Shown here: piece by piece, positions 14,769 to 51,800 of the stretch
Numbering within the stretch: the first letter of the stretch is position 1
Layout: every line of letters begins with the position of its first letter
Assembly (NCBI GenBank): GCA_028826165.1
Contig: JAPDFW010000041.1
Span: 1 to 56,540, forward strand
DNA length: 56,540 bases
Source: Anaeramoeba ignava BMAN
Taxonomy: Eukaryota; Protista; Anaeramoebae
Direction: 5' to 3'
Translations under genes and position numbers: made by a program
The notes under the pieces: generated by a model
Databases searched by the model: none
What the model saw: the letters and a program-made list of their open reading frames with translations, nothing else
What the model was told of the DNA's origin: nothing

Positions 14769-14836
14769 TTTAAAAGAAAAAAAATGAAAAAAGTAAAATG
14801 AAAAAAAAAGTTTTTTTTTTATCATCATTTTTTAAT

Positions 14837-27700: not shown

Positions 27701-30700
27701 CAAACATGCTTGCTAAATGAAGAGCAGTTTTCCCAGCGGAGTTTTTCCTTTCGACATCAACACCTCTCGCAACCAAGAAGTTAAGTGCGATATCTTGACC
27801 ACTTTCCGCATCAAGATGAAGCACTGTATTTCCTTCTTTGTCCGTTAATTCCAAATTTCCTCCCGTTTTTTCGATCCAAGCAAGAAATTTGAATTTTTCA
27901 TATATTGAGGAATAATGGATTGCATAACGACCTTTGCTGTCTATTCTTTGGTCGAGATCTTTTCCTCTTTCCGCGACCAATTTGATGCAGCTCAGCATCT
28001 TGTTATTTGCCACGCAAAGATGCAACGGCGGCATCCCATCTGTTGTTGGTGTAAGTGGGATTCCTTTTGAAAGTAACAATTCAAGAATTTCGGCTTGTTC
28101 TTCCTTTATTGCGTAATGAAGTGCGTTGTCGCCGTTGGGATCTGTGAGAGAAAGGTCTGCGCGTTGTTCCACAATAATGCGCGCGATTTGGTCGTTATGA
28201 GCAAGGATGCTCATCATCAAAGGAGTCCTGTTTTGTTCATCTCGTGCATTGATATCTGCACGTTTTTTCCATTTCTTGCTGAATAATATTTCTACTAAAT
28301 TTTTATGTTCTTTGCGAATGCATATATGGATTACTGCTTCCTTGTTTGGTGTGTATATGTTAGGATCCGCTCCCCGTTCGAGAAGCGCTGCAAAACTTAT
28401 CTCGTTTCCTTTTTCTGCTGCAAGGTGCAAAGGCACCAATCCTTCATTATTCTCTTTGTTTTCGTTGATTTTTTTCTTTTTGAGAACAATTTGTGTTAAA
28501 AGTCCCATTTCATATAAAATTGAATAATGAAGTGCGTTGTTTCCGTTTGTGTCTGTTGCTTGGGTTTTTGCTTTTTTGCTTATTAAATATTGTGCTATTT
28601 CTTTTTGTTTTTCTCTTATTCGCTGAAGAAGTGGTGTAAGTTGTTCTTTGTTTGTTGATTCGATATTTGCTCCTGATTGAAGAAGGAGTTGAACTATTTC
28701 GAGTTTTCCTTGTTTGATTGCGATATGAATAGCTTTATTACCGTATACATCAACAGCTTTTTTTTTAAAAATTCAATTCAATTCAAAATTTAATTTAATT
28801 TAATTTAATTCAAAATTTATTTAAAATTTAATTCAATTTAATTCAATTCAATTTAATTTAATTTAATTTAATTTAATTTAATTTAATTCAATTTAATTCA
28901 ATTCAAAAATTCAATTCAATTCAAAATTTAATTTAATTTAATTTAATTTAATTTAATTTAATTTAATTTAATTTAAAAATTTAATTTAATTCAATTCAAA
29001 ATTTAATTTAATTTAATTTAATTTAAAATTTAATTTAATTTAATTTAATTTAATTTAATTTAATTTAATTTAATTCAAAATTTACATTCTAAATCAACTT
29101 TTTTCTTAATAAACTTCTTTAATTTATTAACATTTCCTGATTCAACTAATTCATGAAATCGACTTTTTGCACCATGTTTAAGTAATAATTCACAGATTTC
29201 CATATTATTATTTTGTTGAGCTAACAACAAAGGAGTAGCACCATTACTATCTGAAGAATTAGGCAAAGCACCAGCTTTAAGAAGAAGATTAACAATTTCT
29301 TTGTGGCCACTTTCTGCGGCATAATGAAGTGGAGAACGATTATCTTTTGATAAACATAAAACAGCAGATTTGTTCTCAAGAATCTGCTCAATTATATTCC
29401 TTGTTCCATATTTTGCTGATAAATGAACTGGGAGCATTCCTTCAGAATTATATGGAATTTTTTGTGATGATAATGTTATTAATTGATGATACGCTTCAAG
29501 TGTTCCTGCTTTTGCTGATATGTGTAATGCAAGATTGCCTTGTTTGTCTGTTATTTCATTCAGTCCTTTATCTTGTGATAATAAATAAAATATTGATTTT
29601 GATGAATTTGCTTGTGCTGCCCAATGGAGCGCAGTCCTAAAAAATTCAAATTTAATTATAAATTTTGTTTTAAATTTTGTTATAAATTTTGTTATAAATT
29701 TAATTATAAATTTAGTTATAAATTTTGTTATAAATTTAGTTATAAATTTTGTTATAAATTTAGTTATAAATTTTGTTTTAAATTTAATTATAAATTTAAT
29801 TATAGATTTAATTATAAATTTTGTTTTAAATTTAGTTTTAAATTTAATTATAAATTTAATTATAAATTGTTTTAGATTGTTTTAAATTGTTTTAGATTGC
29901 TTTAGATTGTTTTAAATTTAATTTTAAATTTTGTTATAAATTTAATTATAAATTTAATTATAAATTTTGTTTTAAATTTAGTTTTAAATTTTATTTTAAA
30001 TTTAATTATAAATTTTGTTTTAAATTTTGTTATAAATTTTATTATAAATTGTTTTAGATTGTTTTAAATTGTTTTAAATTGTTTTAAATTTAATTATAAA
30101 TTGTTTTAGATTGCTTTAGATTGTTTTAGATTGTTTTAGATTGTTTTAGATTGTTTTAGATTGTTTTAAATTTTGCTTTAGATTTTGTTTTAAATTTAAT
30201 TATAAATTTAGTTATAAATTTAATTATAAATTTTGTTTTAAATTTTATTATAAATTTTGTTTTAAATTTTGTTTTAAATTTTGTTATAAATTTTGTTTTA
30301 AATTTAGTTTTAAATTTTGTTTTAAATTTAATTATAAATTTAGTTATAAATTTAATTATAAATTTTGTTTTAAATTTAATTATAAATTTTGTTTTAAACT
30401 TTGTTTTAAATTTAGTTTTAAATTTAATTATAAATTTAATTATAAATTTAGTTATAAATTTAATTATAAATTTTGTTTTAAATTTAATTATAAATTTTAT
30501 TATAAATTTAATTATAAATTTAATTATAAATTTTGTTTTAAATTTAATTATAAATTTTGTTTTAAATTTAATTATAAATTTTGTTATAAATTTTGTTATA
30601 AATTTAATTATAAATTTTGTTTTAAATTTTGTTATAAATTTTGTTTTAAATTTTGCTTTAGATTTTGTTTTAAATTTTGTTATAAATTTTGTTTTAAATT

Positions 30701-31381
30701 TAATTATAAATTTTGTTTTAGATTGTTTTAGATTGTTTTAGATTGTTTTAAATTGTTTTAGATTGTTTTAAATTTTGCTTTAAATTTAATTATAAATTTT
30801 ATTTTAAATTGTTTTAGATTGTTTTAAATTTAATTTTAGATTGTTTTAGATTGTTTTAGATTGTTTTAGATTGTTTTAGATTGTTTTAGATTGTTTTAGA
30901 TTGTTTTAGATTGTTTTAGATTGTTTTAGATTGTTTTAAATTGTTTTAAATTGTTTTAAATTTAATTATAAATTGTTTTAGATTGCTTTAAATTGTTTTA
31001 GATTGTTTTAGATTGCTTTAAATTGTTTTAAATTTTGCTTTAGATTTGAATTTACCATCCTTGATAATCAACAATCCTTGTGCCTGCTTGTTTACTTAAT
31101 AAAAATCTCACAAATCTATGATTATTTCTTTGACAAGCAAATTGAAGAGGAGTTAAAGCAGATTTATCAATTAAATTTATATCAATATGAAAATCAACTA
31201 AAAGTTTTCCAAGTTCATAATTATCATTCTCAATTGATAAATGAAGAGCTGATTGCCCTTTTTCATTAAGTTCATTGATTTCAACAGTTGCATTTGGATC
31301 ATTTAATATTGATGCTATTTTTGTTTTATCTCCTGTACTACATGAATTTAAAAAGCTATTTGTTCTAGATCTTTTTTTCAT
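24708..31381 (-). CDS. Ankyrin-repeat RhoGEF (Dbl homology + split PH domain); two satellite-filled introns; apparent frameshifts at about 28510 and 29440-29570
   Basis: Many ankyrin repeats (GKTALHLASMFGHEKCVSTLVDARA). DH motifs RTSAFREIVDTERNYVSSL and LAGILIKPVQRVGQYPLLLEAFIKPTPKSHPDY. PH motifs RKFILEGLL...YLFLFNDFLIIC...WVKTL. Introns 29637-31055 (join QGW-TALHWAA) and 28757-29085 (join LES-VDVYGNKAIH). Confidence 0.9.
28757..29085 (-). repeat. Intron filled with a 5-bp repeat (AATTT/AATTC)n
   Basis: GTAAAT...AAAG boundaries on the minus strand; pentamer array inside. Confidence 0.85.
29637..31055 (-). repeat. 1419-nt intron filled with mixed 10-12-bp satellite units (AAATTTAATTAT, AAATTTTGTTTT, AGATTGTTTT)
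   Basis: GTAAAT...TTTAG boundaries restore an ankyrin repeat; tandem units are visible throughout. Confidence 0.88.
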
Positions 31382-31786: not shown

Positions 31787-33841
31787 ATGCAAAGTTCATC
31801 AGAAACTGATTCAGAAAAAACATATTTAATCCAAAAAAAACAACCAATGATTAATAAATATAAGGAAATTAAAGCTTTACTTTCTTTAACATTTCCTTTA
31901 ATTCTTGAAAATTTAGCTGTTGTACTTTTTCAAGTTGTAAATTTAATTTCTTTGGGACATCTTGGAGAAGAAGAATTAGCAGGATGTTCTTTAGGTTCAA
32001 TTTTATGGGCAATCTCTATTATGTTTCCACTTGGTTTTGTTCATGCTCTTGATGCTTTTATTTCTCAAGCTCATGGCGCAAAAAATGAAAGACTTGTTGG
32101 TGTTTATGTTTATCAATCTTATTTTATAATGATAATTCTCGCTATTCCTATTGCTTTTCTTTGGTATTTTTCTGGTTCTGTTATGACTGCTTTGAAACAA
32201 GATCATGTTGTTGCTAATTATGCAAGAAAATATCTCATTTGGCAAATTCCTGCTTTGATTCCCTATTTGTTTTTATCAGTTATTCAAGAATGTTTTCAAA
32301 ATTTACAAATTGTTATTGCTCCTTTAGTAATCAATCTTATTGGATTTGGGATTAGTGTTTTTTTGAATTTTGGATTTGTTTATGGTGTTTTCCATTTACC
32401 TAAACTTGGATTTATTGGATCACCAATAGCAACTTCCATATCTGAATTTATTATGTTTGTTTTGATGTATATCTATTTAAAAGTTAAGAAAATTGATAAA
32501 GAATGGAAACTTGAAAAATCAGTATTTAATCCACTTAATTTAATTCCTTTTGTAAAAGTTGGATTGCCAATAGTTTTCACATTGTTAGTAGAAGATCTAA
32601 TATATGAATTAACATTATTTCTTGCAGGAGCAATGGGAACAATTCAAATGGGTGTTCATACAGTTTTAGTTAATATTGATTATCTTTTATATTCCATTGC
32701 TCTTGGATTTTCAGTAGGAGTATCAACAAGAATAGGATATTTTTTAGGATCTGGAGATCCAATATCAGCAATATTAAGCGCAAGATGTAGTTATTTTATT
32801 GGATTTATAATTGGATCAATTAATTTTTTAATAGAAATTTTACTAAGAAAACATCTTGGATATATTTTCAGTTCATCAAAAACAATTATTAATCAAGTTT
32901 CACAAATTGCTTATTATAGTGCTCCAAATGCATTTATATATGCCAATTATATGACATTTGAAGGAATTATGAGAGGAATAGGATCTAATGTTCCAGGATT
33001 TTTATTTACATTTTTTGGATTTTTAGTAATTTCATCAGCACTTTCTTTTGTATTCTTTTTTGAAACAAATCTTGAAGTAAAAGGATTATGGATCGCAATT
33101 ATTATTGGAATATCATGTTCAGCTATTGCAGTTATTTTCTTTTTTTTAAGAAGAATTAATTGGAAAAAACAATCAGATATTGCAGTATTAAGAGCAACAC
33201 ATGAATGGTCATCAAGAAGTGAATCTGAAAGTGATGAAGATGAAAAAAAGAAAAAGAAAAAGAAAAAGAAAACAAAAAAGAAAACAAAAATGCAAACAAA
33301 AAAGAAAGATCGATATAAAAAGAAAGATAAACATAAAGGAACTTTTCTTTCAGAATCAGAATCTAAATCAGAATCAGAATCAAAATCAAAATCAGAATCA
33401 GAATCAAAATCAAAATCAAAATCAATTTCAATTTCAACCTCAAAATCAATCTCAACCTCATCAACATCCTCATCTACTTCAGAATTTCCAAGTGAATTAT
33501 CTGATACTGGAAATGATATTGAAAATGATATTGAAAATGAAAATGAAAATGAAAATGAAAATCAAAACGAAAATCAAAATCAAAATCAAAATCAAAATCA
33601 AAATCAAAATCAAAATCAAAACCAAAATCAAAATATAAATCAAAACCAAAATCAAAATATAAATCAAAATGAAAATGATATTGAAAATCAAAATCAAAAA
33701 ATTCAACAAATAATTTCTGAAAATGATTTTGAAAATGATAATCAAAATAATAATATTATTAATATTGATATTGAAAATGTAAATGAAAAAAGTGATAATT
33801 CAATTGATTTAAATTCAGATTCTTCAGATTCATTTGTATAA
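31787..33841 (+). CDS. MATE family efflux transporter, copy 1 (low-complexity C-terminal tail)
   Basis: LGHLGEEELAGCSLG, ALDAFISQAHGAKN, PKLGFIGSPIATS, GFSVGVSTRIGYFLGSG, KGLWI; about 12 TM segments; eukaryotic/NorM-type motifs. Confidence 0.93.
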   Translation: MQSSSETDSEKTYLIQKKQPMINKYKEIKALLSLTFPLILENLAVVLFQVVNLISLGHLGEEELAGCSLGSILWAISIMFPLGFVHALDAFISQAHGAKNERLVGVYVYQSYFIMIILAIPIAFLWYFSGSVMTALKQDHVVANYARKYLIWQIPALIPYLFLSVIQECFQNLQIVIAPLVINLIGFGISVFLNFGFVYGVFHLPKLGFIGSPIATSISEFIMFVLMYIYLKVKKIDKEWKLEKSVFNPLNLIPFVKVGLPIVFTLLVEDLIYELTLFLAGAMGTIQMGVHTVLVNIDYLLYSIALGFSVGVSTRIGYFLGSGDPISAILSARCSYFIGFIIGSINFLIEILLRKHLGYIFSSSKTIINQVSQIAYYSAPNAFIYANYMTFEGIMRGIGSNVPGFLFTFFGFLVISSALSFVFFFETNLEVKGLWIAIIIGISCSAIAVIFFFLRRINWKKQSDIAVLRATHEWSSRSESESDEDEKKKKKKKKKTKKKTKMQTKKKDRYKKKDKHKGTFLSESESKSESESKSKSESESKSKSKSISISTSKSISTSSTSSSTSEFPSELSDTGNDIENDIENENENENENQNENQNQNQNQNQNQNQNQNQNQNINQNQNQNINQNENDIENQNQKIQQIISENDFENDNQNNNIINIDIENVNEKSDNSIDLNSDSSDSFV

Positions 33842-34048
33842 AAAAAAATATAAACAAAACAAAGAAAGAAAGAAAGAAAGAAAACTTTCTTTTTTTGTGT
33901 TTATTAAATTTTTTTAGATTGAAAATTTTAATTTAAAAATTCATGAAAACTAAAATCAAAATATAAAAAAATTTATTTTTTTTTTCATTTTTTTCATTTT
34001 TTTTAATTGCAAATTTAAATAAAAATAAAAATAAAAAAAAATATCAAA

Positions 34049-35881
34049 ATGCAAAGTTCATCAGAAACTGATTCAGAAAAAACATATTTAATCCAAAAAA
34101 AACAACCAATGGTTAATAAATATAAGGAAATTAGAGCTTTACTTTCTTTAACATTTCCTTTAATTCTTGAAAATTTAGCTGTTGTACTTTTCCAATCAGT
34201 AAATTTAGTTTCTTTGGGACATCTTGGAGAAGAAGAATTAGCAGGATGTTCTTTAGGTTCAATTTTATGGGCAATTTCTACTATGTTTCCACTTGGTTTT
34301 GTTCATGCTCTTGATGCTTTTATTTCTCAAGCTCATGGCGCAAAAAATGAAAGACTTGTTGGTGTTTATGTTTATCAATCTTATTTTATAATGATAATTC
34401 TCGCTATTCCTATTGCTTTTCTTTGGTATTTTTCTGGTTCTGTTATGACTGCTTTGAAACAAGATCATGTTGTTGCTAATTATGCAAGAAAATATCTCAT
34501 TTGGCAAATGCCTGGTTTAGTTCCTTTTTTGTTTTTATCAGTTATTCAAGAATGTTTTCAAAATTTACAAATTGTTATTGCTCCTTTAGTAATCAATCTT
34601 ATTGGATTTGGAGTTAATATTTTTTTGAATTTTGGATTTGTTTATGGTGTTTTCCATTTACCTAAACTTGGATTTATTGGATCACCAATAGCAACTTCTA
34701 TTTCTGAATTTATTATGTTTGTTTTGATGTATATCTATTTAAAAGTCAAGAAAATTGATAAAGAATGGAAACTTGAAAAATCAGTATTTAATCCACTTAA
34801 TTTAGGACCATTTTTAAAAGTTGGATTACCAATAGTTTTCACAATGTTAATTGAAGAATTAATATATGAATTAACATTATTTCTTGCAGGAGCAATGGGA
34901 ACAATTCAAATGGGTGTTCATACAGTTTTAGTTAATATTGATTATCTTTTATATTCCATAGGACTTGGATTTTCAGTAGGAGTATCAACAAGAATAGGAT
35001 ATTTTTTAGGATCTGGAGATCCAATATCAGCAAGATTAAGTACAAGATGTAGTTATTTTATTGGATTTATAATTGGAGCAATTAATAGTTCTATTGTTAT
35101 TTCATTAAGAAAACATCTTGGATACATTTTCAGTTCATCAAAAACAATTATTAACCAAGTTTCACAACTTGCTTATTATAGTGCAGTTCATGCATTTATT
35201 GATGCTAATTATACTACATTTGAAGGAATTATGAGAGGAATAGGATCTAATGTTCCAGGATTTTTAATCACATTTTTTGGATTTTTAACAATTTCAACAA
35301 CACTTTCTTTTGTATTCTTTTTTGAAACCAATCTTGAAGTAAAAGGATTATGGATTTCAATTATTGTTGGAATATCAAGTTCAGCTATTGCAGTTATTTT
35401 CCTATTTTTAAGAAGAGTTAATTGGAAAAAACAATCAGATATTGCAGTATTAAGAGCAACACATGAATGGTCATCAAGTAGTGAATCTGAATCTGAATCT
35501 GAATCTGAAACTGAAACTGATGAATTTATTTCAAAATCATCAACTTCATCTTCAACATTTTCAAGTGAATCATCTGAGAATGAAGATGAAACTGAAAATC
35601 AAGATCAAGATCAAGATCAAGAACATCTTAAAGTTAGTAATCAATCAGAAACTTCATCTTTATCATCTTCAACATTTTCAAGTGAATCATCTGAAACTGA
35701 AGATGAAAATGAAGATGAAAATGAAAATCAAAATCAAAAAATTCAACAAATAATTTCTGAAAATGATTTTGAAAATGATAATCAAAATAATACTATTATT
35801 AATATTGATATTGAAAATGTAAATGAAAAAAGTGATAATTTAATTGATTTAAATTCAGATTCTTCAGATTCATTTGTATAA
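34049..35881 (+). CDS. MATE family efflux transporter, copy 2
   Basis: Near-identical paralogue of the flanking copies with the same motifs. Confidence 0.93.
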   Translation: MQSSSETDSEKTYLIQKKQPMVNKYKEIRALLSLTFPLILENLAVVLFQSVNLVSLGHLGEEELAGCSLGSILWAISTMFPLGFVHALDAFISQAHGAKNERLVGVYVYQSYFIMIILAIPIAFLWYFSGSVMTALKQDHVVANYARKYLIWQMPGLVPFLFLSVIQECFQNLQIVIAPLVINLIGFGVNIFLNFGFVYGVFHLPKLGFIGSPIATSISEFIMFVLMYIYLKVKKIDKEWKLEKSVFNPLNLGPFLKVGLPIVFTMLIEELIYELTLFLAGAMGTIQMGVHTVLVNIDYLLYSIGLGFSVGVSTRIGYFLGSGDPISARLSTRCSYFIGFIIGAINSSIVISLRKHLGYIFSSSKTIINQVSQLAYYSAVHAFIDANYTTFEGIMRGIGSNVPGFLITFFGFLTISTTLSFVFFFETNLEVKGLWISIIVGISSSAIAVIFLFLRRVNWKKQSDIAVLRATHEWSSSSESESESESETETDEFISKSSTSSSTFSSESSENEDETENQDQDQDQEHLKVSNQSETSSLSSSTFSSESSETEDENEDENENQNQKIQQIISENDFENDNQNNTIINIDIENVNEKSDNLIDLNSDSSDSFV

Positions 35882-36113
35882 AAAAAACATAAACAAAACA
35901 AAGAAAGAAAGAAAGAAAACTTTCTTTTTTGTGTGTTTATTAAATTTTTTTAGATTGAAAATTTTAATTTAAAAATTCAAAATAAACCAAAAAAAAAATT
36001 TATTTTTTTCATTTTTCTTCTTTTTTCTTTTCATTTTTTTCCTTTTCTTTTTTCCTAATTTTTTATCTTTAATTAAATTTAAAAAAAAAATAAAAATAAA
36101 AAAAAATATCAAA

Positions 36114-38081
36114 ATGCAAAGTTCATCAGAAACTGATTCAGAAAAAACATATTTAATCCAAAAAAAACAACCAATGATTAATAAATATAAGGAAATTAGA
36201 GCTTTACTTTCTTTAACATTTCCTTTAATTCTTGAAAACTTAATAAATTTTCTTACTCAAATAGTAGATCTTGTTTTTTTGGGACATCTTGGAGAAGAAG
36301 AATTAGCAGGATGTTCTTTAGGTTCAATTTTATGGGCAATTTCTACTATGTTTCCACTTGGTTTTGTTCATGCTCTTGATGCTTTTATTTCTCAAGCTCA
36401 TGGCGCAAAAAATGAAAGACTTGTTGGTGTTTATGTTTATCAATCTTATTTTATAATGATAATTCTTTCTATTCCTATTGCTTTTCTTTGGTATTTTTCT
36501 GGTTCTGTTATGGTTTCTTTGAAACAAGATCATGTTGTTGCTAATTATGCAAGAAAATATCTCATTTGGCAAATGCCTGGTTTAGTTCCTTTTTTGTTTT
36601 TATCAGTTATTCAAGAATGTCTTCAAAATTTACAAATTGTTATTGCTCCTTTAGTAATCAATCTTATTGGATTTGGAGTTAATATTTTTTTGAATTTTGG
36701 ATTTGTTTATGGTGCCTTTCATTTTCCTAAACTTGGATTTATTGGATCACCAGTCTCAACTTCTATTTCTGAATTTATTATGTTTGTTTTGATGTATATC
36801 TATTTAAAAGTCAAGAAAATTGATAAAGAATGGAAACTTGAAAAATCAGTATTTAATCCACTTAATTTAGGACCATTTTTAAAAGTTGGATTACCAATAG
36901 TTTTCACAATGTTAATTGAAGAATTAATATATGAATTAACATTATTTCTTGCAGGAGCAATGGGAACAATTCAAATGGGTGTTCATACAATTTTGGTGAA
37001 TTTTGATTATCTTTTATATTCAATAGGACTTGGATTTTCAGTAGGAGTATCAACAAGAATAGGATATTTTTTAGGATCTGGAGATCCAATATCAGCAAGA
37101 TTAAGTACAAGATGTAGTTATTTTATTGGATTTATAATTGGAGCGATTAATAGTTCTATTGTTATTTCATTAAGAAAACATCTTGGATACATTTTCAGTT
37201 CATCAAAAACAATTATTAATCAAGTTTCACAACTTGCTTATTATAGTGCAGTTCATGCATTTATTGATGCTAATTATACTACATTTGAAGGTGTTATGCA
37301 TGGAATAGGATCTAATGTTCCAGGATTTTTAATCACATTTTTTGGATTTTTAACAATTTCAACAACACTTTCTTTTGTATTCTTTTTTGAACCAAATCTT
37401 GAAGTAAAAGGATTATGGATTTCAATTATTGTTGGAATATCAAGTTCAGCTATTGCAGTTATTTTCCTATTTTTAAGAAGAGTTAATTGGAAAAAACAAT
37501 CAGATATCGCAGTATTAAGAGCAACACATGAATGGTCATCAAGTAGTGAATCTGAATCTGAATCTGAATCTGAAACTGAAAAAGATCATGATGAATTTAT
37601 TTCAAAATCATCAACTTCATCTTCTTCATCTTCTTCATCTTCAACATTTTCAAGTGAATCATCTGAGAATGAAGATGAAAATGAAGATGAAAATGAGAAT
37701 ACGAATTCCAATATAAATATAATTGAAATTCAAAATGAAAATCAAAATGAAAATCAAAACGAAAATGAAATTCAAAATCAAAATCAAAACGAAAATCAAA
37801 ATCAAAATCAAAACGAAAATCAAAATCAAAATAATCAAAATCAAAATAATCAAAATCAAAATAATCAAAATCAAAATAATCAAAATCAAAATCAAAATCA
37901 AAATCAAAATCAAAAATCAAAAGATTTTGATATTGATATTAATATAAATCTTAATTTTGATATTGATTCTGATTCTGATTCTGATTCTGATTCTGATTCT
38001 GATTCTTATAAAGCAAATGAATTAAACAAAAGTGATGATTTAATTGATTTACACTCAAATTCTTCAAATTCATTTGTATAA
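36114..38081 (+). CDS. MATE family efflux transporter, copy 3
   Basis: Same motifs; distinct TM1 and tail. Confidence 0.93.
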   Translation: MQSSSETDSEKTYLIQKKQPMINKYKEIRALLSLTFPLILENLINFLTQIVDLVFLGHLGEEELAGCSLGSILWAISTMFPLGFVHALDAFISQAHGAKNERLVGVYVYQSYFIMIILSIPIAFLWYFSGSVMVSLKQDHVVANYARKYLIWQMPGLVPFLFLSVIQECLQNLQIVIAPLVINLIGFGVNIFLNFGFVYGAFHFPKLGFIGSPVSTSISEFIMFVLMYIYLKVKKIDKEWKLEKSVFNPLNLGPFLKVGLPIVFTMLIEELIYELTLFLAGAMGTIQMGVHTILVNFDYLLYSIGLGFSVGVSTRIGYFLGSGDPISARLSTRCSYFIGFIIGAINSSIVISLRKHLGYIFSSSKTIINQVSQLAYYSAVHAFIDANYTTFEGVMHGIGSNVPGFLITFFGFLTISTTLSFVFFFEPNLEVKGLWISIIVGISSSAIAVIFLFLRRVNWKKQSDIAVLRATHEWSSSSESESESESETEKDHDEFISKSSTSSSSSSSSSTFSSESSENEDENEDENENTNSNINIIEIQNENQNENQNENEIQNQNQNENQNQNQNENQNQNNQNQNNQNQNNQNQNNQNQNQNQNQNQKSKDFDIDININLNFDIDSDSDSDSDSDSDSYKANELNKSDDLIDLHSNSSNSFV

Positions 38082-38152: not shown

Positions 38153-40049
38153 ATGGAAATTTTACTTGTAAAAATATTTTATATTTATTTATTGGAAAAT
38201 TAATTATAAAAAAAACTATTTGCAAAATTAACTTGTTTTTCAATTCAATAAAAATTAAAAAATTAGAAAAAAAAAATACTTGAAATTTTTAAAACTGATA
38301 ATTTAGAACAATTAAAATCATTTTTACCTCAAAATATAAAACCAAATGCAGTTATTGATGTATTTATATCCTCAAATAAAATAAATTTAAAATTTAAAAT
38401 ATATAATAAAGGGAGTAAATAATAATAATTATTCTATTTAGCTTTGAGAAAAAAAAAACTTAATAACTTATTAAATTTAATTTAGAATGTAATTTAAATT
38501 TATATTTATATTCAAATTCATAAAAATTTTTGAAAATAATATTTTTAAATTATTCTTATTATAGGGTGATACATTACTTCATTTAGTATGTGGTTTTCGT
38601 CCAAAAGGAACAGAAATTATTAAATGGTTATTAAATAATAATTGTTCTGTTTCTAAAAAAAATGTAAAATAATGATGATAATAATTTTAATTTTAATTTT
38701 AATTTTAATTTTAATTTTAATTTTAATTTTAATATATTTTATAGTCTGTATATTAATTAAATTCTTTTTATTTGAACATTTTTGTTTTTGTTTTTAATTT
38801 GTATCATTTTAAAAAATTGGAATAAAGATTGTAAAAAAAAAAACAAATTGAAAATTCCATTTTCATAATTTTAAAATGTTAAATTTATATAATATAATTA
38901 AAGGGTCATAACCCTTTTCTTATTGCTTGTAGAAATCAAGCTTCTTTAAATGTTATTAAATTGCTATTAGAATCAGGAGCTGATATTCATGTTAACGATG
39001 TATTTATGAACAAAATGGAATGAATTTTGTTAATATTTTATATAAAATTATAAAATTATAAAAGAATGTAAATTTTGATTTAAATTTTGATTTGAATTAA
39101 ATTTTGATTTGATTTAAATTTTAGCAAGTAATTTAAAAGAGAAAATGTTGTTTAACTCTAGTTTATTTTTCTTTTTTTTATATTGTGAAACTATTTTATT
39201 TAAGATGAATACTCCATTACATTATCTTGTTATGTGGAAAGAATCAATTGATACTCTCAAATTTTTATTAGAAAAAGGAATTGATCCAAATTCTAAAAAT
39301 GTACACTTAATAATAATAATTATAATTATTATATATTAATGTTACAAAAATACTTTAATTTTTATTAGAAAGTTTTTATCAATTTTTCTTGATTGTTGTT
39401 TTTTAGTCAAAATAAAATAAAATTTATAAATGAAAATCATCTCATCTTATTTATTTAGAATGTATTAAAAAAAAATTTCTTTATAATTGATAATTGATTT
39501 AGATTTTTACATCTTAATATTTTAAGGGATTAACTCCATTACATTTAGCTTGTATTTGTGGTAGTGAAATTGAAAAAGTTAAACTACTTCTTGGTTATGG
39601 AGCTGATATTTTAGCAGAAGAAGTGAATTATTTTAATTCAAGGAAAAAACAATTTGATTAAATTTTCAATTAATTTAATTTTTATAATTTAGAAAGTATT
39701 TTTGATTTTATAACTGAATATGAATAAATATCAATTTATTTTCTTTTTTTTTGATTTGTAGAATGGAATAACACCAATAGATTATGCAACTTCATGGGCT
39801 TCAAATAAAGATATTTTATCATTATTTTTTTTACATGCAGAATCAAAAAATATTAAAATTAATGTGAATAATTTTTGAATTAAAATCATTCTAAATTTAA
39901 CATAAAATTATTATAATAATATCTTTTTTGATAATTTAAAGAAAGAAAAATTAGTATTATTAGCAAAAAGAACAGGATTATCTCAAGAAGTTTTAGATAT
40001 AATTGATAATGAAGAAAAGATCAACAAATCCAAAACATTTAGAAGATGA
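38153..40049 (+). CDS. Cryptic ankyrin-repeat protein (~243 aa), 17 exons including nine 3-nt microexons; all introns phase 0
   Basis: Large exons: 38153-38167, 38267-38359, 38565-38663, 38904-38999, 39205-39300, 39527-39622, 39762-39863, 39942-40049. With microexons in brackets: MEILLKKKILEIFKTDNLEQLKSFLPQNIKPNAVID[G][N]GDTLLHLVCGFRPKGTEIIKWLLNNNCSVSKKN[S][I]GHNPFLIACRNQASLNVIKLLLESGADIHVND[N][Q]MNTPLHYLVMWKESIDTLKFLLEKGIDPNSKN[K][N]GLTPLHLACICGSEIEKVKLLLGYGADILAEE[K]NGITPIDYATSWASNKDILSLFFLHAESKNIKINKEKLVLLAKRTGLSQEVLDIIDNEEKINKSKTFRR*. A 1-nt error near 40017 would extend an acidic tail to 40143. Exon 1 is the least certain. Confidence 0.85.
38412..39695 (+). other. Set of nine single-codon microexons
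   Basis: AG|NNN|GT at 38412-38414 GGA, 38486-38488 AAT, 38745-38747 TCT, 38828-38830 ATT, 39065-39067 AAT, 39125-39127 CAA, 39369-39371 AAA, 39459-39461 AAT, 39693-39695 AAA; flanking introns are 52-87 nt. Confidence 0.8.
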
Positions 40050-40302
40050 TGAAGATGAAGATGATGAAAATATTATTATTGAAATTATTTCTGAAACAAA
40101 GAAAATAGAAAATATTGATAATCAATCCAAAAATTTAAATTAGAATTAAAATTAAAATTAAAATTAAAATTAACAAAAAAAGTGGAACAAAATAAAATCA
40201 ATTTAAAATTTTCTTTTATTTTTCTTTTATTTTTTTATTAATGAAAAAAAAAAGAAATCAATTCAATTCAATTCAAATCAATTCAATTCAAATCAATTCA
40301 AA

Positions 40303-40743
40303 TCAATTCAATTCAACAACTTTGTAATTCAATAAGAAAGCAAAAGATAACCAAGCAAGATAAGGAGCAAAAATAAGAGCACCAACAAAATCAACAAATA
40401 AAAGAGAAACAAAAATCAAAGCAACAACAGAAATTAGTAAAGAAATAATAATAAGACCAACAAAAGGTTTTTGTTTCTTAAAGAAAAAAAATGGCCAAAT
40501 AAAATTAAGAACTAATTGAAAAATAGAAAGCAAAAAAATCTTATAATTTTCTTTTTGGAATTCTCGATTCAAAACAATTCCAATTAAAAGATATAAAATA
40601 GTCCAAGCAACAGGAAAAACATAACTTGGTGGTGTAAATTTTGGTTTATGTAATTTTTGATACCATTTTGTATTTCCTGAATTGGAAAATCTTGAAACTG
40701 TAAAACCTCCAATAACTGGTGTAAAAATAAGAATAAAATTCAT
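40303..40743 (-). CDS. tspO: TspO/MBR (translocator protein, tryptophan-rich sensory protein)
   Basis: WYQKLHKPKFTPPSYVFPVAWTILYLLIG, QLVLNFIWPFFFF, APYLAWLSFAFLLN; 146 aa, 5 TM, intronless. Confidence 0.93.
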   Translation of the reverse strand: MNFILIFTPVIGGFTVSRFSNSGNTKWYQKLHKPKFTPPSYVFPVAWTILYLLIGIVLNREFQKENYKIFLLSIFQLVLNFIWPFFFFKKQKPFVGLIIISLLISVVALIFVSLLFVDFVGALIFAPYLAWLSFAFLLNYKVVELN

Positions 40744-41494: not shown

Positions 41495-43513
41495 TTAATT
41501 AATTAAACAATTCGATTTTTGTTTTGATTTAATTTGGAAAGCAGGATCATTTTTAGCTTTTTCTTCAGCTTTTTCATTTTGTTTTTGCATTTTTTTAATT
41601 TTTTCTTGAGCTTTCTTTTTTGCAATTCTTCTTTTTTTCTTCAATTTAAGATGATTATACATTGCATCAAGTTGGGAACTACTCATTCCATAATATTCAG
41701 AACAATCATATAATTCATCAGCCAATTCTTCATTAATATTTGTAAGTTCATCTGTGTATAAAAAATAAACAAATCTTTTAACAGCCTCAAAACTTCTTCC
41801 ACTAAAATCTGGAGCAGTATTTGATGTATCATTTACATTTAATAAAAGCATATTTCGATATAATTCACTTCGAGCAGCAAGAAGCATTTTATGAGCTTGA
41901 AGCTTTTGATCCTCAATCAAAATTGTAAAATCTTTGCTTTCTTCATCTTCATATAAATCTTTCATATCTTTTTGAAGTTGTTCTGATCCATTTTTGGGAT
42001 TAAATCCAAATCCATGTAATAATGAAGAAACAATACTAAATTGTGGATCATCAAATTTCATTTTGTGAATTCCTGTGTAAATAAAGAAGATGAAAGAATC
42101 TACAACTTCAAATGGATATTTTGAGCATTCATATTTGATCATATTTAAAAAATCTTCTTCTTTAATTGTATCTTGAGTGATTTCCTGAATATTTTGATTT
42201 TGAATTTGAATTTGATTTTCATTTTCATTTTCATTTTGATTTTCATTTTTAATTTGATTTTGATTTTCATTTTCATTTTTAATTTGATTTTGATTTTTAA
42301 TTTGATTTTCATTTTCATTTTGATTTTCATTTTGATTTTCATTTTTAATTTGATTTTCATTTTCATTTTCATTTTGATTTTCATTTTCATTTTCTTCTTT
42401 TTCCTTCTTAAATAATTTACTCCGAATCTTTAAAAAATAAGAATGAGCTCGAATACTTTTTCCATCTGAACAAATAATTTCGAAATCAGTCAAATCTTGA
42501 CTAACCAAAAAATTCCCCAAATCACGTTGAAGATCTGAAATTAAAGAAATCGAATGAAATTCTTTAACTGTAGTATATTTACTAACAACAACATCATAAG
42601 AACTACCACCAATCACATACATATTTCCATCTCTTTCAAAAACAGTAGGATCACGCTTAGCAAGAGGACGATCCAATCTCATTGTTTGAATTTTATTCCA
42701 AGTATTTGTATGAAAATTAAAAAAAAGTAATTCATCAGTTTCTTTGTTTGTTTTATGAATTTTGCCACCAAAAATAAACAAAGAATGCCTATAAATAACA
42801 GCTCCATGACCCGAACGTTGATCTGGAATAAATGAAGATTTTGCTTCAATAATTCTCCATTCTTCATTTTTTAAATTGAATCCAAAAATAAAATCATTAT
42901 CGTTGTAATGACCCCAACCTCCATAAAGAATAATTTCATCGTCATAAATATTCCAAGAAGCTCCTGAACGAGGTTTTGGAGCATTTCCTTTGTCATGAGT
43001 GATCATTTTTAAAGAATCTGAAACAATATCATATTCATAAAAAGAGAAATTATTTATATGTTCTGATCCAGAATAAATATAAATTGTTCCATCATAATAA
43101 AGTGATTTAAAATTAGATGAATAAAGTTTATTATTTAATGGTTTTGTTTGGATTTCAAATGAATCATTTGATTTTTTCAGCAAATTAACCAACATAAAAT
43201 TTGTTGAAATTAGCAACAATGTATCTTCAAATATCAAACAATCATAAATATTATAAAGATATTGTCTTATCACTCCCATTTTGTTGAATTTTTTTGTTTG
43301 TGGGTAATAAATATATAATTCAAAGTCTCCATATCCATATTCTGAATGTGACATAAAAAAAATAAATGCTTCTTCTTTTTTATAATATAATACTCGAATA
43401 CTTGGATAATATCCAAATGGTAATTGTGTATTTTCAGGGAAATCTTCAACATTCCATTTCTTATATTTTTTCTCTTTAATTTCTTTTTTTTTCTCTTTAA
43501 TTTCTTTATTCAT
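41495..43513 (-). CDS. Kelch-repeat protein with two BTB domains (LZTR1-like architecture), C-terminal CaaX-like motif
   Basis: Kelch motifs PKPRSGAS..IILYGGW, PDQRSGHGAVIYRHSLFIFGG, MYVIGG. BTB motifs LTDFEIICSDGKSIRAHSYFLKIRS and KDFTILIEDQKLQAHKMLLAARSELYRNM. Ends ...KQKSNCLIN*. Confidence 0.9.
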   Translation of the reverse strand: MNKEIKEKKKEIKEKKYKKWNVEDFPENTQLPFGYYPSIRVLYYKKEEAFIFFMSHSEYGYGDFELYIYYPQTKKFNKMGVIRQYLYNIYDCLIFEDTLLLISTNFMLVNLLKKSNDSFEIQTKPLNNKLYSSNFKSLYYDGTIYIYSGSEHINNFSFYEYDIVSDSLKMITHDKGNAPKPRSGASWNIYDDEIILYGGWGHYNDNDFIFGFNLKNEEWRIIEAKSSFIPDQRSGHGAVIYRHSLFIFGGKIHKTNKETDELLFFNFHTNTWNKIQTMRLDRPLAKRDPTVFERDGNMYVIGGSSYDVVVSKYTTVKEFHSISLISDLQRDLGNFLVSQDLTDFEIICSDGKSIRAHSYFLKIRSKLFKKEKEENENENQNENENENQIKNENQNENQNENENQIKNQNQIKNENENQNQIKNENQNENENENQIQIQNQNIQEITQDTIKEEDFLNMIKYECSKYPFEVVDSFIFFIYTGIHKMKFDDPQFSIVSSLLHGFGFNPKNGSEQLQKDMKDLYEDEESKDFTILIEDQKLQAHKMLLAARSELYRNMLLLNVNDTSNTAPDFSGRSFEAVKRFVYFLYTDELTNINEELADELYDCSEYYGMSSSQLDAMYNHLKLKKKRRIAKKKAQEKIKKMQKQNEKAEEKAKNDPAFQIKSKQKSNCLIN

Positions 43514-44059: not shown

Positions 44060-47000
44060 TCATCTTTCATCAGGAATAATTTCAATTTTAAATGGTTCAT
44101 TCCAACATTTATATTCGTTGTTATAATAAATATATGCTCTTGATGATGGACCTTGATATATTCCTGGTACACTTGCAATAACATCAATATTAAATTTAAT
44201 TTCTTCTTTGTCTTTTAAATTATACCAATAAAATACTAATTCTCTTGATCCAAACATTTCAAAAAATGCAAATATTTCTTGTTTCATCATTTCTTTTAGT
44301 TTTTCATATCTAACTTCCATTCCTCCTGGTAATCCAATAATTGCTATACTCATTGGAAGAACTTTATCTGTTTTGTTTCGGATAATTACTTCAATTTCTG
44401 TTGATTCTCCTTGTTTAATTTTTTGAATTTCATTTTGATTTTCATTTTGATTTGTTGTTATTAATTTGCTTTTCATTTCAATTAAACATTCTTTATCACT
44501 TTTGGGTTTGTTTGTTGTTAAATTAACTTGAAATACATATGGCATTCCAATTCCATCAATCATTTCTAATTCAACTGTGTTTTCTTTTCCTTTTTTTAAT
44601 TCTTTACAAAAATCTGGAAAAAGTATTGGTCCTGTATGTTTTTCATCAAATCCAATTGCTTCAATAGATTCTTCATTGATTTTTAATTCAATAGATCCTT
44701 CTTTCATCATTTTTGAATTTTTGATATCAAATTTTAATATTGCTTTTAATGCAAGAACTGTTGATTGTGTTGAACCAAAATTTCCTCCTTTGCAATTTGT
44801 TGTTAAATAATTCATCGCAAATTGAATATTTTCTGCAAATTCTTCATGAAAATTTAATAATGAAAGAATAACTAATGATGTTGTTTCCATTTTTAAATCA
44901 AATCCTCTTGATGATGTAATTGTTGTTTTGGATTTACTTATTGAACCATCTTCTTCTTGTGATTTAATTGAAATAATTTTGCGATTTAATTCAAGTGATT
45001 TTTCATTTAATCCAAAATTAAATAAACTTAATGAAATTAATGCAAGAAAATAACTATCTTCTTCCCATTCTTTTTCTTTGCTTTGTTCAAGTAAATATTC
45101 AATAACTTTTTCTAATCTGGAATATTCAATTTTAGATTCTGATAATGCCCAAGTAATATATGCATTTGTAATTTGTTCTGGTGAATGACTTAAATGATCA
45201 GGTGCATATGGATTTAATTCAAAAATTCTTTTTTCAGAATTAAATCTTGAAAATAACCAATTTTTAGTTCGATTTAACATTGTAAAATCAATATTCATTA
45301 CACTTGATAAATCAGTAAATTCCATAATTCCCATTGCAGTTAATGCTTCTGATGCTGGACTATTTCCAAACCAACTAAATCCTCCTCCTTTACATTCATA
45401 TCCAATTAATCTTTTATATCCTCTTTCTAATTTATCACTTGATTCTAATATCCAACTTGGATCAACTCCAACATGTGTTTTGAAGTATTGTTGTGCCATT
45501 GTTAATGGATAAACAGTTGTTGATGTTTGTTCAAAACATCCATATGGTTCTCTTATTAATGATTTCATTGATTCTTGAAGAGTTGCCATTGGTGATGGAA
45601 AAATACAACAATATGTTGTAAAACTTCCTTCAACAATATCATCTGGAATTTCAAATGTAAATTTCTTTTTACTGTTTGATTTCAAAAATCCTGATGAATT
45701 AATATCATATGGAAATCCAGTTGGTTTAATTTCAAGTTGTCGAATAACTTGATCTTTTAATGATGGATTATTATCATCAATTCCAGTTATTTTAAGTGAT
45801 GTTGTTTCTAAAATTTGTTCAACTTCAAATTCAAATAAATGTTTTGTTCTCATTTGAGATTTTAAAATATCATTCCATTTAGATTCACCAATAGGAATAA
45901 TTCCTTTATTCAAAATTTCAGTTTCTAATGATAATTGAATATCAGAAGGAAGTGAGTTAACTAATGCAACTGGAACAATAATTTTATCACCAAAAGATAC
46001 TTCAAGAGGTAATCTTGGTTCTAAATAAAATGGTTCTTTTGAATCAATCACAAAACTATCATAATATCCAAGTAATCCATTTTGATTACATCCATCAATA
46101 AAAATTCTGAAAGAAGAAACAGAATCATTTAAATCAAAAGTAAATTTCGCAAAACTTTCAGAAGTTTGATCTTTGGATCTTATAACAGATAAGTAAGGAG
46201 AATAAAATAAAGTATTGGTAAAATCGGAACGTTCTCCAGGTTTTCTTAATGAATTTGTTCGATGTGCATATACCCTTTGAAAAAGTAAGGCTATTTTTTT
46301 CTTTTTCATAGGCCTTCTTCTTCTGCTTTTTGCAGCAATTTTCTTTTTTTTAGGTTTTTTTTCAAAATCTTCCATTGGTAATGATTGCTTTTGTTTTGCC
46401 ATTTCTTGTTTCATTGGTGGAGGTGCTTCAGATAATATTGGTGCTTCAATGGATTTTCCATCTGTTTCTTCATTAGTTTGTTCATTAGTTTGTTCATTAG
46501 TTTGTTCAACAATTTGTTCACTTTCTGTAACTTTAGTAATAATTTGAGGTAATGTTTGGGGTTTAATGGATCTATCTTTGAAAACTTCATTATCTTCATA
46601 TTTATAAAGAACTAACATTCTTTCAAATTTTTCTTTATCATCTCTTTGAAATAAATTATTATCAATTTTGATAAATCTTCTCCATCCTTGTGTTCCTAAT
46701 AATAAATCTAATTCTTCATATTCTTCATTTTTTTCTTTTTCATTTTCATTTTCATTTTCATTTTCATTTTTATCTCTTTCTGGTGATAAATAAATTTGAC
46801 AATCTTCAAAATGTTCAACTTCATTTTCAAGGAAATACATTGATGGTAATCTTGCTGGTCTTTCTCTTTTTTCTTTCATTTTATATATTGAATCATCTGT
46901 TATTGTTATTCCAAAATCACATTCAATATTTTTTCCTTGTTTGTTTTTTGATTTAATTGTTAATGTAACTTTATCTCCTGGACAATAACTACTTTTATCT

Positions 47001-48421
47001 GCAATAACTTCAAATAAAATTTCATCATTTGGATGAACAAATATAATTCTTTCACAAAGTGGTTCTATATCTTGTTTTTCCCAAACAGTTATTCTTAATA
47101 CTCCATCATTTCCATTTGTATCTAATTTTATTTCTTGAGTTGTATTTGCTTGATTGAATTTAACATTTTTAGAAGTTATTAATTTTTCTTTTTTATATAA
47201 ACAAACTGGAAAATTTCCTTTAAATGATGAAGATAAAGTGATTGAAATTGACTCATTATATTTAAATGATTTTTTATTGGAAATTAAAGAAATTCCTTTT
47301 TCTTTTGATTTAGGAAGATTAATTGGAATTGTTATTCCACTTGGTTTAATAATTTGAATTGAATATTCTGAATTTGATTGAGGAATAAATTCAAATCTTC
47401 CTCTTCCTTCATGAATTGTTTTAACTATTTTTTGATTTTTGATTTTTGAATTAAATATTGAATAGATTTATATTTATATTTATATTTATATTTCAAATAT
47501 TTATATTTTATTTATATTTATATTTATATTTATATTTCAAATATTTATATTTATATTTATATTTATATTTCAAATATTTATTTACTTGTAATGTTTTTAT
47601 TAATATCTTCTTTATTTGATGAAATTAATATTCCTTCAAAATCAGCTGGATCACCTGTTGGTGTTGTTGCTTCAAAATATACTCCACATTTAACTCCATT
47701 AACAAGATCTCCTCCTTCTGGATATATATTAACATCTAACTTTTTTAAAATTATTGGAAGTGTTTTTGATGCATTTTCAATTACTCCTCCATCTTGAATT
47801 GAACAATTCAAATTTCCAATTCCTTCTTTAATATTTTCTGGTAATTTGAAATGAAATTAAACATTTTCCATTTTTATCAATTTTATAATCTCCTCGATAT
47901 ACTTCTTCATTATCAAGTCTTGCTATTGCTGTTACATTTGCTCCTTCAGGAAATCCTCCTTCAGCTCTTTCAACAAATAAACTTGCTTTGACTTCATCTC
48001 CTGCTCCATATGCTTTTTGAATAAATTCTAATTCATTTTTTAATCTTGGTGGTGAATAACTTTTAACTGTAACTTTTCTAATTGAATTTGGAATTCCTCT
48101 TCCATTTTTATAAACAATTTCAATCGTATATTCACCTCCTGATGCTGTTTTTGGTATTTCCCAAGAACCTGATAAAAAATTTTTTTCTCTTCCCAATCTT
48201 TTCTCAAATAAAATATCATTTTTAGGACCTTTGATTTTTAAAAAAGGAAAGCCACAATACATCGAATTTTCAAATGGTTTATGATTAAAAGCATCAAGAA
48301 TAATTGCTCTTATAAATATTTTTTCACCAGGTTTATAAGTATGTTTATCAGTTGAAATATGAACTGTAAATCTTTCAACTTCTGTGTATTCTTTTAATAA
48401 TTTTGATTCGTTATTTCCCAT
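44060..48421 (-). CDS. Alpha-2-macroglobulin-like thioester-containing protein, copy A (one intron 47425-47585; apparent 1-nt frameshift at about 47848)
   Basis: MG2-type VHISTDKHTYKPGEKIFIRAIILD; YPEGGDLVNG; LDLLLGTQGWRRF; RSDFTNTLFY..FDLNDSVSSFRI; thioester motif PYGCFEQT (GCFEQ at 45527-45541); GGFSWFG; receptor-binding-type C-terminus GPSSRAYIYY. Confidence 0.9.
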
Positions 48422-48636
48422 TTCTTTTTTTATTATTAATAATAATTAAAATAATAATAAAAATAATAAATTTTAAAAAGAAAAAAAATGAAAAATAAAA
48501 AATTTAAAATAATTTTTTTTTGCTTTTTTTATTTTAATTTATTCTTAAAGTAAGAACAAATTTTCTCTTTTTTTTTTTTTTCCATTTTCCTTCCACTTTT
48601 TTTTTTCACCTTTTTTTTTTAAATTGAATTAATAAT

Positions 48637-48851
48637 CAAAATTAAAATTAAAATTAAAATTGGAATTAAAATTAAAATTGAAATTAAAATTGAAATTAAA
48701 ATTGAAATTAAAATTGAAATTAAAATTGAAATTAAAATTGAAATTAAAATTGAAATTAAAATTAAAATTGAAATTGAAATTGAAATTAAAATTGAAATTA
48801 AAATTAAAATTAAAATTAAAATTAAAATTAAAATTAAAATTAAAATTAAAA
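48637..48851. repeat. (AAAATT/GAAATT)n array abutting the stop codon of A2M copy B
   Basis: Direct inspection. Confidence 0.9.
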
Positions 48852-51800
48852 TCATCTTTCATCAGGAATAATTTCAATTTTAAATGGTTCATTCCAACAT
48901 TTATATTCGTTGTTATAATAAATATATGCTCTTGATGATGGACCTTGATATATTCCTGGTACACTTGCAATAACATCAATATTAAATTTAATTTCTTCTT
49001 TTTCTTTTAAATTATACCAATAAAATACTAATTCTCTTGATCCAAACATTTCAAAAAATGCAAATATTTCTTGTTTCATCATTTCTTTTAGTTTTTCATA
49101 TCTAACTTCCATTCCTCCTGGTAATCCAATAATTGCTATACTCATTGGAAGAACTTTATCTGTTTTGTTTCGAATTATTACTTCAATTTCTGTTGATTCT
49201 CCTTGTTTAATTTTTTGGATTTCATTTTGATTTTCATTTTGATTTTCATTTTCATTTTGATTTGTTGTTATTAATTTGCTTTTCATTTCAATTAAACATT
49301 CTTTATCACTTTTGGGTTTGTTTGTTGTTAAATTAACTTGAAATACATATGGCATTCCAATTCCATCAATCATTTCTAATTCAACTGTATTTTCTTTTCC
49401 TTTTTTTAATTCTTTACAAAAATCTGGAAAAAGTATTGGTCCTGTATGTTTCTCATCAAATCCAATTGCTTCAATAGATTCTTCATTAATTTTTAATTCA
49501 ATAGATCCTTCTTTCATCATTTTTGAATTTTTGATATCAAATTTTAATATTGCTTTTAATGCAAGAACTGTTGATTGTGTTGAACCAAAATTTCCTCCTT
49601 TGCAATTTGTTGTTAAATAATTCATCGCAAATTGAATATTTTCTGCAAATTCTTCATGAAAATTTAATAATGAAAGAATAACTAATGATGTTGTTTCCAT
49701 TTTTAAATCAAATCCTCTTGATGATGTAATTGTTGTTTTGGATTTACTTATTGAACCATCTTCTTCTTGTGATTTAATTGAAATAATTTTGCGATTTAAT
49801 TCAAGTGATTTTTCATTTAATCCAAAATTAAATAAACTTAATGAAATTAATGCAAGAAAATAATTATCTTCTTCCCATTCTTTTTCTTTACTTTGTTCAA
49901 GTAAATATTCAATAACTTTTTCTAATCTGGAATATTCAATTTTAGATTCTGATAATGCCCAAGTAATATATGCATTTGTAATTTGTTCTGGTGAATGACT
50001 TAAATGATCAGGTGCATGTGGATTTAATTCAAAAATTCTTTTTTCAGAATTAAATCTTGAAAATAACCAATTTTTAGTTCGATTTAACATTGTAAAATCA
50101 ATATTCATTACACTTGATAAATCAGTAAATTCCATAATTCCCATTGCAGTTAATGCTTCTGATGCTGGACTATTTCCAAACCAACTAAATCCTCCTTCTT
50201 TACATTCATATCCAATCAATCTTTTATATCCTCTTTCTAATTTATCACTTGATTCTAATATCCAACTTGGATCAACTCCAACATGTGTTTTAAAATATTG
50301 TTGTGCCATTGTTAATGGATAAACAGTTGTTGATGTTTGTTCAAAACATCCATATGGTTCTCTTATTAATGATTTCATTGATTCTTGAAGATTTGCCATT
50401 GGTGATGGAAAAATACAACAATATGTTGTAAAACTTCCTTCAACAATATCATCTGGAATTTCAAATGTAAATTTCTTTTTACTGTTTGATTTCAAAAATC
50501 CTGATGAATTAATATCATATGGAAATCCAGTTGGTTTAATTTCAAGTTGTCTAATAACTTGATCTTTTAATGATGGATTATTATCATCAATTCCAGTTAT
50601 TTTAAGTGATGTTGTTTCTAAAATTTGTTCAACTTCAAATTCAAATAAATGTTTTGTTCTCATTTGAGATTTTAAAATATCATTCCATTTAGATTCGCCA
50701 ATAGGAATAATTCCTTTATTCAAAATTTCAGTTTCTAATGATAATTGAATATCTGAAGGAAGTGAATTAACTAATGCAACTGGAACAATAATTTTATCAC
50801 CAAAAGATACTTCAAGAGGTAATCTTGGTTCTAAATAAAATGGTTCTTTTGAATCAATCACAAAACTATCATAATATCCAAGTAATCCATTTTGATTACA
50901 TCCATCAATAAAAATTCTGAAAGAAGAAACAGAATCATTTAAATCAAAAGTAACTTTCGCAAAACTTTCAGAAGTTTGATTTTTGGATCTTATAACAGAT
51001 AAGTAAGGAGAATAAAATAAAGTATTGGTAAAATCGGAACGTTCTCCAGGTTTTCTTAATGAATTTTTTTGATGTGCATATTGTCTTTGATATTCAGAGC
51101 GTAAATGAGGTGGAAGCGGTTTTGATTGAGAGAAATATCGTTTACCACTTAAAGTTTTTTTTGATTTTGAAGGAATTGCCAAATCTTTCATTGGTAGAGA
51201 TTGTTTTCGTTGTTCCATTTCTTGTTTCATTGGTGGAGGTGCTTCAGATAATATTGGTGCTTCAATGGATTTTCCATCTGTTTCTTCATTAGTTTGTTCA
51301 TTAGTTTGTTCAACAATTTGTTCACTAGTTTGTTCATTAGTTTGTTCAACAATTTGTTCACTTTCTGTAATTTTGGTAATAATTTGCTGTTTAAAAAAAG
51401 TATCAATTGGAACGTTATTCCTTATTCCAAGTTGGATTTCGTTAATATCTTCATTTTTATAAAGAACTAACATTCTTTCAAATTTTTCTTTATCATCTCT
51501 TTGAAATAAATTATTATCAATTTTGATAAATCTTCTCCATCCTTGTGTTCCTAATAATAAATCTAATTCTTCATATTCTTCATTTTTTTCATTTTCATTT
51601 TCATTTTCATTTTCATTTTCATTTTCATTTTTATCTCTTTCTGGTGATAAATAAATTTGACAATCTTCAAGATGTTCAACTTCATTTTCAAGGAAATACA
51701 TTGATGGTAATCTTGCTGGTCTTTCTCTTTTTTCTTTCATTTTATATATTGAATCATCTGTTATTGTTATTCCAAAATCACATTCAATATTTTTTCCTTG

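Follow-up and report, generated by a model that had tools for sequence, protein, structure and literature searches.

An ankyrin-repeat gene and its neighbours

The window under study comprises all 56,540 nucleotides of contig JAPDFW010000041.1 (GCA_028826165.1) from Anaeramoeba ignava, a free-living anaerobic metamonad (PMC11550330); a protein encoded near the gene described below falls into a cluster with an A. ignava transcriptome protein. At positions 38153-40049 it carries an NCBI-annotated gene whose large exons all lie on the + strand, are in phase 0 and have GT-AG boundaries. The annotated gene begins with a coding exon of five codons that carries the ATG start (38153-38167), followed by an N-cap exon of 31 codons (38267-38359) whose last codon corresponds to D in the first turn. 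Next come four ankyrin repeat exons, the first of 33 codons (38565-38663) and the others of 32 codons each (38904-38999, 39205-39300 and 39527-39622), which scored 22.1, 23.5, 27.9 and 30.7 bits, respectively, in Pfam Ank searches (PF00023; curated cut-off 21.1 bits). Thus, four repeat exons individually exceed the cut-off, identifying the product as an ankyrin repeat protein; the alignment of the fourth to DARPin repeats runs from the G of DxxG onward. A last, degenerate repeat exon of 34 codons (39762-39863) fell below the cut-off in the same search, and the last annotated coding exon comprises 35 codons and a stop (39942-40049). Domain searches, run with single exons, returned matches to ankyrin only and none to NACHT, and, going by the ankyrin family, we take the protein to be a small protein-interaction module.

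The 3' end of the annotation calls for comment. Within the annotated last exon, third codon positions are devoid of G and C for 25 codons and then carry them in 4 of 10, and a shifted frame from 40018 encodes a 41-residue acidic tail with typical codon usage (40013-40143, +). There is probably a 1-nt indel near 40013-40018, be it an assembly error or real, and the C-terminus may extend about 30 residues beyond the annotated one; on codon usage, the true C-terminus could be this acidic tail (40018-40143, +).

Three tandem MATE transporter genes (31787-38081, +) lie just upstream of the ankyrin gene. The window also contains a TspO gene (40303-40743), a Kelch-BTB gene (41495-43513) and, on the - strand, a tandem pair of large genes (44060-53312) that, as read from sequence, resemble alpha-2-macroglobulin/thioester proteins. 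Two further ankyrin loci are on the - strand. The first (11969-14828) lacks introns: its array of about 20 repeats spans two overlapping ORFs, a BTB-like start comes after it, and the locus belongs to a large A. ignava ankyrin-BTB family. The second (24708-31381), annotated as a 1641-aa protein, reads as ankyrin repeats followed by RhoGEF- and PH-like regions; its introns are full of simple repeats, one being ~1.4 kb long, and it holds no one-codon exons.

Nine codon-sized islands in the hairpin spacers

A previous sequence-only reading had proposed that residues at the hairpin tips of this protein are each encoded by a 3-nt exon lying in the spacers between the large exons. All its coordinates for exons, islands and introns proved correct: nine AG-NNN-GT islands occupy the five hairpin spacers, dividing them into 14 introns of 52-87 nt, and the two introns outside hairpins (99 and 78 nt) hold none. 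These putative one-codon exons, all on the + strand, are described here by the position that they would fill in the DxxG turn, x1 or x2. The first spacer carries GGA (Gly, x1; 38412-38414, flanking introns 52 and 71 nt) and AAT (Asn, x2; 38486-38488, 71 and 76 nt), the second TCT (Ser, x1; 38745-38747, 81 and 80 nt) and ATT (Ile, x2; 38828-38830, 80 and 73 nt), the third AAT (Asn, x1; 39065-39067, 65 and 57 nt) and CAA (Gln, x2; 39125-39127, 57 and 77 nt), and the fourth AAA (Lys, x1; 39369-39371, 68 and 87 nt) and AAT (Asn, x2; 39459-39461, 87 and 65 nt). The fifth spacer provides an internal control, also noted in the earlier reading: the exon that follows it (39762-39863) already opens with the x2 codon, and the spacer holds a single island, AAA (Lys, x1; 39693-39695, introns of 70 and 66 nt).

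For comparison, the ~32,000 introns of A. ignava have a mode of 76 nt, a median of 102 nt, a minimum of 35 nt and 8% GC (PMC11550330 Table S3A). Being internal, at most 15 nt long and bounded by canonical GT-AG introns of normal length, the islands have the size and boundaries of microexons. They are non-repetitive and lie on the sense strand. When the hairpin spacers were subjected to 5000 dinucleotide shuffles, AG-N3-GT occurred 0.46 times on average and 4 times at most, versus 9 observed, and no shuffle placed an island in all five spacers; other spacings from N0 to N12 were at chance level in the window spacers. The nine-island architecture is thus confirmed as highly non-random.

Island codons would restore the length of the ankyrin turn

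Turn length was measured as the number of residues from the G of GADV to the T of TPLH, with 12 as the canonical value. A motif count gave 12 residues in 33 of 38 uninterrupted ankyrin junctions, and a junction profile of other organisms gave 12 in 1646 of 1752 turns, those shorter by one or by two residues numbering 12 and 3, respectively. Without islands, the junctions after repeats 1-4 of the window gene measure 10, 10, 10 and 11 residues; with them, each measures 12. The claim that islands restore canonical junctions therefore stands for these four, but the cap junction comes to 13, though D-x-x-G itself is restored. As had been proposed, the islands supply the residues missing from DxxG, namely positions 2 and 3, and these are indeed the positions randomized as binding positions in designed ankyrin libraries (PMC4308713).

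The NCBI model has missed all of them, as had been anticipated for gene prediction: its 234 residues are exactly the sum of the large exons, and KAJ5079076.1 (P0006, 234 aa), which a search with the last repeat exon retrieved at 100% identity, lacks the nine island residues. Taken together, the sequence features indicate that the nine islands are very probably one-codon exons supplying the DxxG tip residues.

Further A. ignava genes with the same architecture

Paralogues were gathered with a contiguous ORF of the window and part of P0094, the record of a different gene, as queries, and annotated proteins were screened for short turns. Two of 28 A. ignava ankyrin records, P0094 and P0209, had short turns at every scored junction. 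None of seven A. flamelloides ankyrin records displayed this signature, and two of their loci had no AG-N3-GT excess, too few cases for the feature to count as missing from that species. The P0094 gene (locus L002) encodes about 21 repeats and a BTB domain, and contains 29 islands as well as two annotated 12-nt exons (at 6184 and 6974). The P0209 gene (L003) has 11 repeats and 22 islands, and its annotation treats one island-intron-island stretch as an exon. Further along the same locus (L003 13889-15317), two GAT islands (13997 and 14090) lead to an exon that is open from 14208 through a protein kinase domain, in frame; P0209 and the separately annotated downstream protein kinase are probably one gene that the annotation has split.

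Together with the nine of the window gene, this yields 60 usable islands on three contigs. The spacers of the three genes contain 61 AG-N3-GT occurrences, as opposed to at most 7 for any other spacing between 0 and 15 (4 for N0), and shuffled controls gave a mean of 3.25 and a maximum of 12. The absence of stop codons noted in the earlier reading extends to all three genes (0 of 60; P ~0.002 given spacer triplets). By codon position, GC is 0.27/0.18/0.07 in islands and 0.40/0.30/0.08 in large exons, the same falling pattern. Island donors read GTA in 54 of 60 cases, the 92 island-flanking introns have a median length of 71 nt, and island residues are rich in Asn, as in uninterrupted paralogues.

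These counts bear on the simplest alternative, namely that AG-NNN-GT arises by chance in AT-rich introns or through an assembly artefact. A tandem repeat elsewhere in the window does yield AG-ATT-GT, on the antisense strand of an intron, and such repeats can inflate counts; the islands, by contrast, are found on three contigs, and 163 kb of A. ignava sequence outside these genes show no excess of N3 (12 occurrences, versus up to 46 for other spacings). The window shuffles, the three-gene spacing counts and the 163-kb control rule this explanation out, and we give it practically no weight.

A fourth gene (L002 11323-13466, also L009 18323-20953; annotated as 409 aa, with no Pfam match on record) adjoins P0094 and shows the architecture in part: it is a spliced ankyrin gene that devotes an exon to each repeat and carries two one-codon exons, each standing singly. 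As a rule, a symmetric exon holds one repeat in the window gene, L002, L003 and this fourth gene alike. Fetched paralogues whose turns are mostly normal have few introns or none. The architecture is thus common to at least three A. ignava genes, and partly to a fourth, and was missed by annotation; the public models of at least three genes appear to be wrong.

With regard to transcripts, none of the island-bearing genes yielded a transcript-derived copy. Two A. ignava proteins known from transcripts have turns of normal length; one matches the genome model without gaps, and the other has no recorded locus. The 90% clusters of KAJ5079076.1, P0094 and P0209 have one member each and contain no transcript-derived copy (no EukProt, no RNA-derived entry). 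A bait search with a 250-aa ORF retrieved no Anaeramoeba proteins, searches with architecture patterns had no match in JGI metagenomes or viral contigs, and an Rfam search had no match.

Three adjacent intron sites as the probable basis of the islands

Phase-0 introns are found at three adjacent positions of the turn: A (D|x1), B (x1|x2) and C (x2|G). The fourth gene has C alone or B+C, and the window gene A+B or A+B+C. In the former, each of seven consecutive junctions has an intron directly before the G of DxxG. If the exon preceding the spacer carries both tip residues, the spacer lacks islands, even at a length of 389 nt; if that exon carries the first residue only, an AAT island is present, a case that the last junction of the window gene (A+B) mirrors. 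The cap junction of the fourth gene has a second candidate island, which follows an unusual GAG acceptor and is probably due to chance.

Overall, 25 of 32 scorable junctions total 12 residues. Exactly two islands are found in 19 of the 23 junctions that are two residues short and none in any of the five complete ones, showing that islands occur only where residues are missing. The exceptions are the window cap junction, at 13, and four L002 junctions, three at 11 and one at 10 with a candidate 12-nt exon; two L002 junctions are filled by 12-nt exons rather than by 3-nt islands. We also note two L002 spacers without a 3-nt island, one (5306-5474) with candidate islands of 4, 7 and 9 nt and the other (8109-8281) with a candidate island of 12 nt.

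It could be argued that the islands, as vestiges of exons or as intermediate points of splicing, are absent from the mature mRNA, the 234-aa protein with short turns being the real product. The annotation does join the large exons directly, and the intronless ankyrin-BTB paralogue P0068 (L006 10001-12019) tolerates one natural turn two residues short. However, the number of islands matches that of the missing residues across four genes, and the islands are free of stops and have a coding-like base pattern. Zero-length AG|GT, the form that recursive splice points take, shows no enrichment (N0). We consider this explanation improbable, and have high confidence, from these sequence features, that the islands are real exons. 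The short turn of P0068 itself may be either a tolerated deletion or the trace of a skipped, reverse-transcribed junction.

A proposed model for the splicing of putative consecutive one-codon exons

The reading that we favour, with a probability of about 0.68, is that the islands are real and mostly constitutive one-codon exons, joined as introns are removed one at a time, and multiplied by repeat duplication. The window gene would be a functional member of a spliced A. ignava ankyrin subfamily with one repeat per exon, in which introns may have been gained at adjacent sites; wherever neighbouring sites among A, B and C are occupied, the codon between them would become a 3-nt exon. The spliceosome would recognize each short and very AT-rich intron as a unit (intron definition) and take as acceptor the first AG past a minimum distance, the short, G-poor introns leaving each GT and AG nearly unambiguous. 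Since splice sites 3 nt apart presumably cannot both be engaged at once, given the geometry of the spliceosome, we propose that introns are removed sequentially, each codon being ligated to the lengthening exon before splicing proceeds to the following intron. Consecutive removal of introns flanking microexons has been described in plants (PMC8831610). The main mRNA would include all nine codons and encode 243 residues, versus the annotated 234, with canonical turns.

If island donors are used, each opening its own intron, stray AGs should be rare at a distance from them. Indeed, beyond 45 nt from an island donor AG occurs at 5 of 1632 positions, versus 49 of 2100 nearer to it, a ratio of 7.8; the ratio for GA, taken as a control, is 1.9.

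The recurrence of the pattern is explained by repeat exons duplicating along with their introns, which would make the exon and its introns the duplicating unit. This is directly visible in L002, where positions 5475-7452 comprise a recent internal duplication of repeat blocks together with introns and islands. Between the duplicates, 19 of 300 exon positions and 11 of 479 intron positions carry substitutions (p=0.007; few events, with no dN/dS model). The codon changes are 13 non-synonymous and 2 synonymous, several of them at the end of helix 1, and the homologous x2 codons are GGT, AGT and GCT (Gly, Ser and Ala).

Several observations count against constitutive inclusion and sequential splicing. 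The protein clusters contain no transcript-derived copy, the public annotation skips the islands, a few L002 junctions depart from canonical length, and P0068 indicates that two-short turns are not impossible. In addition, apart from simple repeats, no sequence similarity connects the introns at the three sites, and none of an introner-like kind was found among them.

Codon-sized exons in other lineages

According to four papers citing Iotti et al. 2012 (PMID 22289772; cited in PMC4986451, PMC13449251, PMC3689799 and PMC9815663), the NACHT-ankyrin (nank) genes of the truffle Tuber melanosporum contain tens of alternatively spliced 3-bp exons. The absence of precedent implied in the earlier reading thus does not hold. 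As described in those papers, the resemblance lies in many codon-sized exons in ankyrin-repeat genes of an expanded family. It concerns exon size, position within the repeat being compared for A. ignava only. The differences are that Tuber is a fungus and A. ignava a metamonad protist, that the A. ignava proteins are devoid of NACHT and are ankyrin-only, ankyrin-BTB and probably ankyrin-kinase, and that alternative splicing of the mini-exons is reported for nank, while the A. ignava exons are predicted from genomic sequence. The arrangement was found described only for the truffle gene family, and A. ignava represents a further variant in a distant lineage, probably by convergence.

This precedent suggests another explanation, in which genuine one-codon exons undergo regulated or stochastic alternative splicing and thereby vary the binding surface, as described for nank; in-frame skipping at each turn would generate many isoforms recognizing prey, symbionts or parasites. 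Every island is in phase 0 and 3 nt long, hence any skip stays in frame, and the residues occupy binding-surface positions (PMC4308713). Moreover, cytohesin-1 changes its ligand specificity through an exon of 3 nt (PMC6314551), and the L002 duplicates have more exon than intron substitutions and differ in their x2 codons. The excess of exon changes, however, comes from few events and is not specific to islands. Furthermore, a junction never has more than two islands in the three full genes, leaving no spares to choose from, skipping can only delete residues, towards turn lengths that are rare elsewhere, and the island donors are strong. We thus regard diversification as unlikely, albeit the main alternative. 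Also unlikely, in our estimation, is that the protist independently evolved a truffle-type device, its tip codons being isolated and then kept by selection since their skipping or exchange varies a recognition surface. Lacking NACHT, the window gene does not belong to the nank genes, but may work like one. Mostly constitutive inclusion is favoured because there are no spare islands, any skipping would leave the turn at a rare, shortened length, and the island residues resemble those of uninterrupted paralogues.

Other systems share single aspects of this architecture. In the abstract of the Ectocarpus study (PMC3341825), ROCO-LRR and NB-ARC-TPR genes, which encode candidate receptors, are described as having an exon for each repeat, as duplicating and shuffling their repeats, and as showing signs of diversifying selection. 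One repeat per symmetric exon is also the A. ignava arrangement, but the Ectocarpus repeats are LRR or TPR and that abstract names no codon-sized exons. Plant microexons of 1-15 nt are missed by annotation (PMC8831610). In cytohesin-1 and the plant cases, exons down to a single codon are spliced, alter binding properties and escape annotation, features that A. ignava would share; their microexons are isolated or at most paired, whereas A. ignava has a systematic pair at every repeat. The micro-exon genes (MEGs) of Schistosoma encode secreted proteins, with runs of mostly 6-36-bp symmetric exons. A. ignava likewise has runs of very short symmetric exons, but its 3-nt exons are interspersed with exons that each encode an entire repeat of a folded domain. 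Introns aligned with repeats are also known from animal ankyrins. No mention of microexons was found in the Anaeramoeba papers searched.

If constitutive one-codon exons are indeed present, the A. ignava spliceosome would routinely join 3-nt exons two in a row, and do so dozens of times in a gene. This is near the physical limit of exon size, and would make the system well suited to testing intron definition and the ordered removal of introns. Ankyrin genes with codon-sized exons would exist in a second, distant lineage, mapped here to the binding turn, and whether the link between exon and turn reflects selection or is a by-product of repeat duplication would become testable. Were the truffle-type device the correct reading, a symbiont-bearing metamonad would possess a splicing-based repertoire for non-self recognition. 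Annotated ankyrin proteins in which all turns are two residues short offer a screen for missed exons.

Lastly, the ankyrin-BTB gene at L002 adjoins a gene for a 2327-aa NRPS-like protein (L002 1-1960; L009 1725-8960) with AMP-binding, PP-binding, condensation and PH domains, which is unusual for a metamonad.
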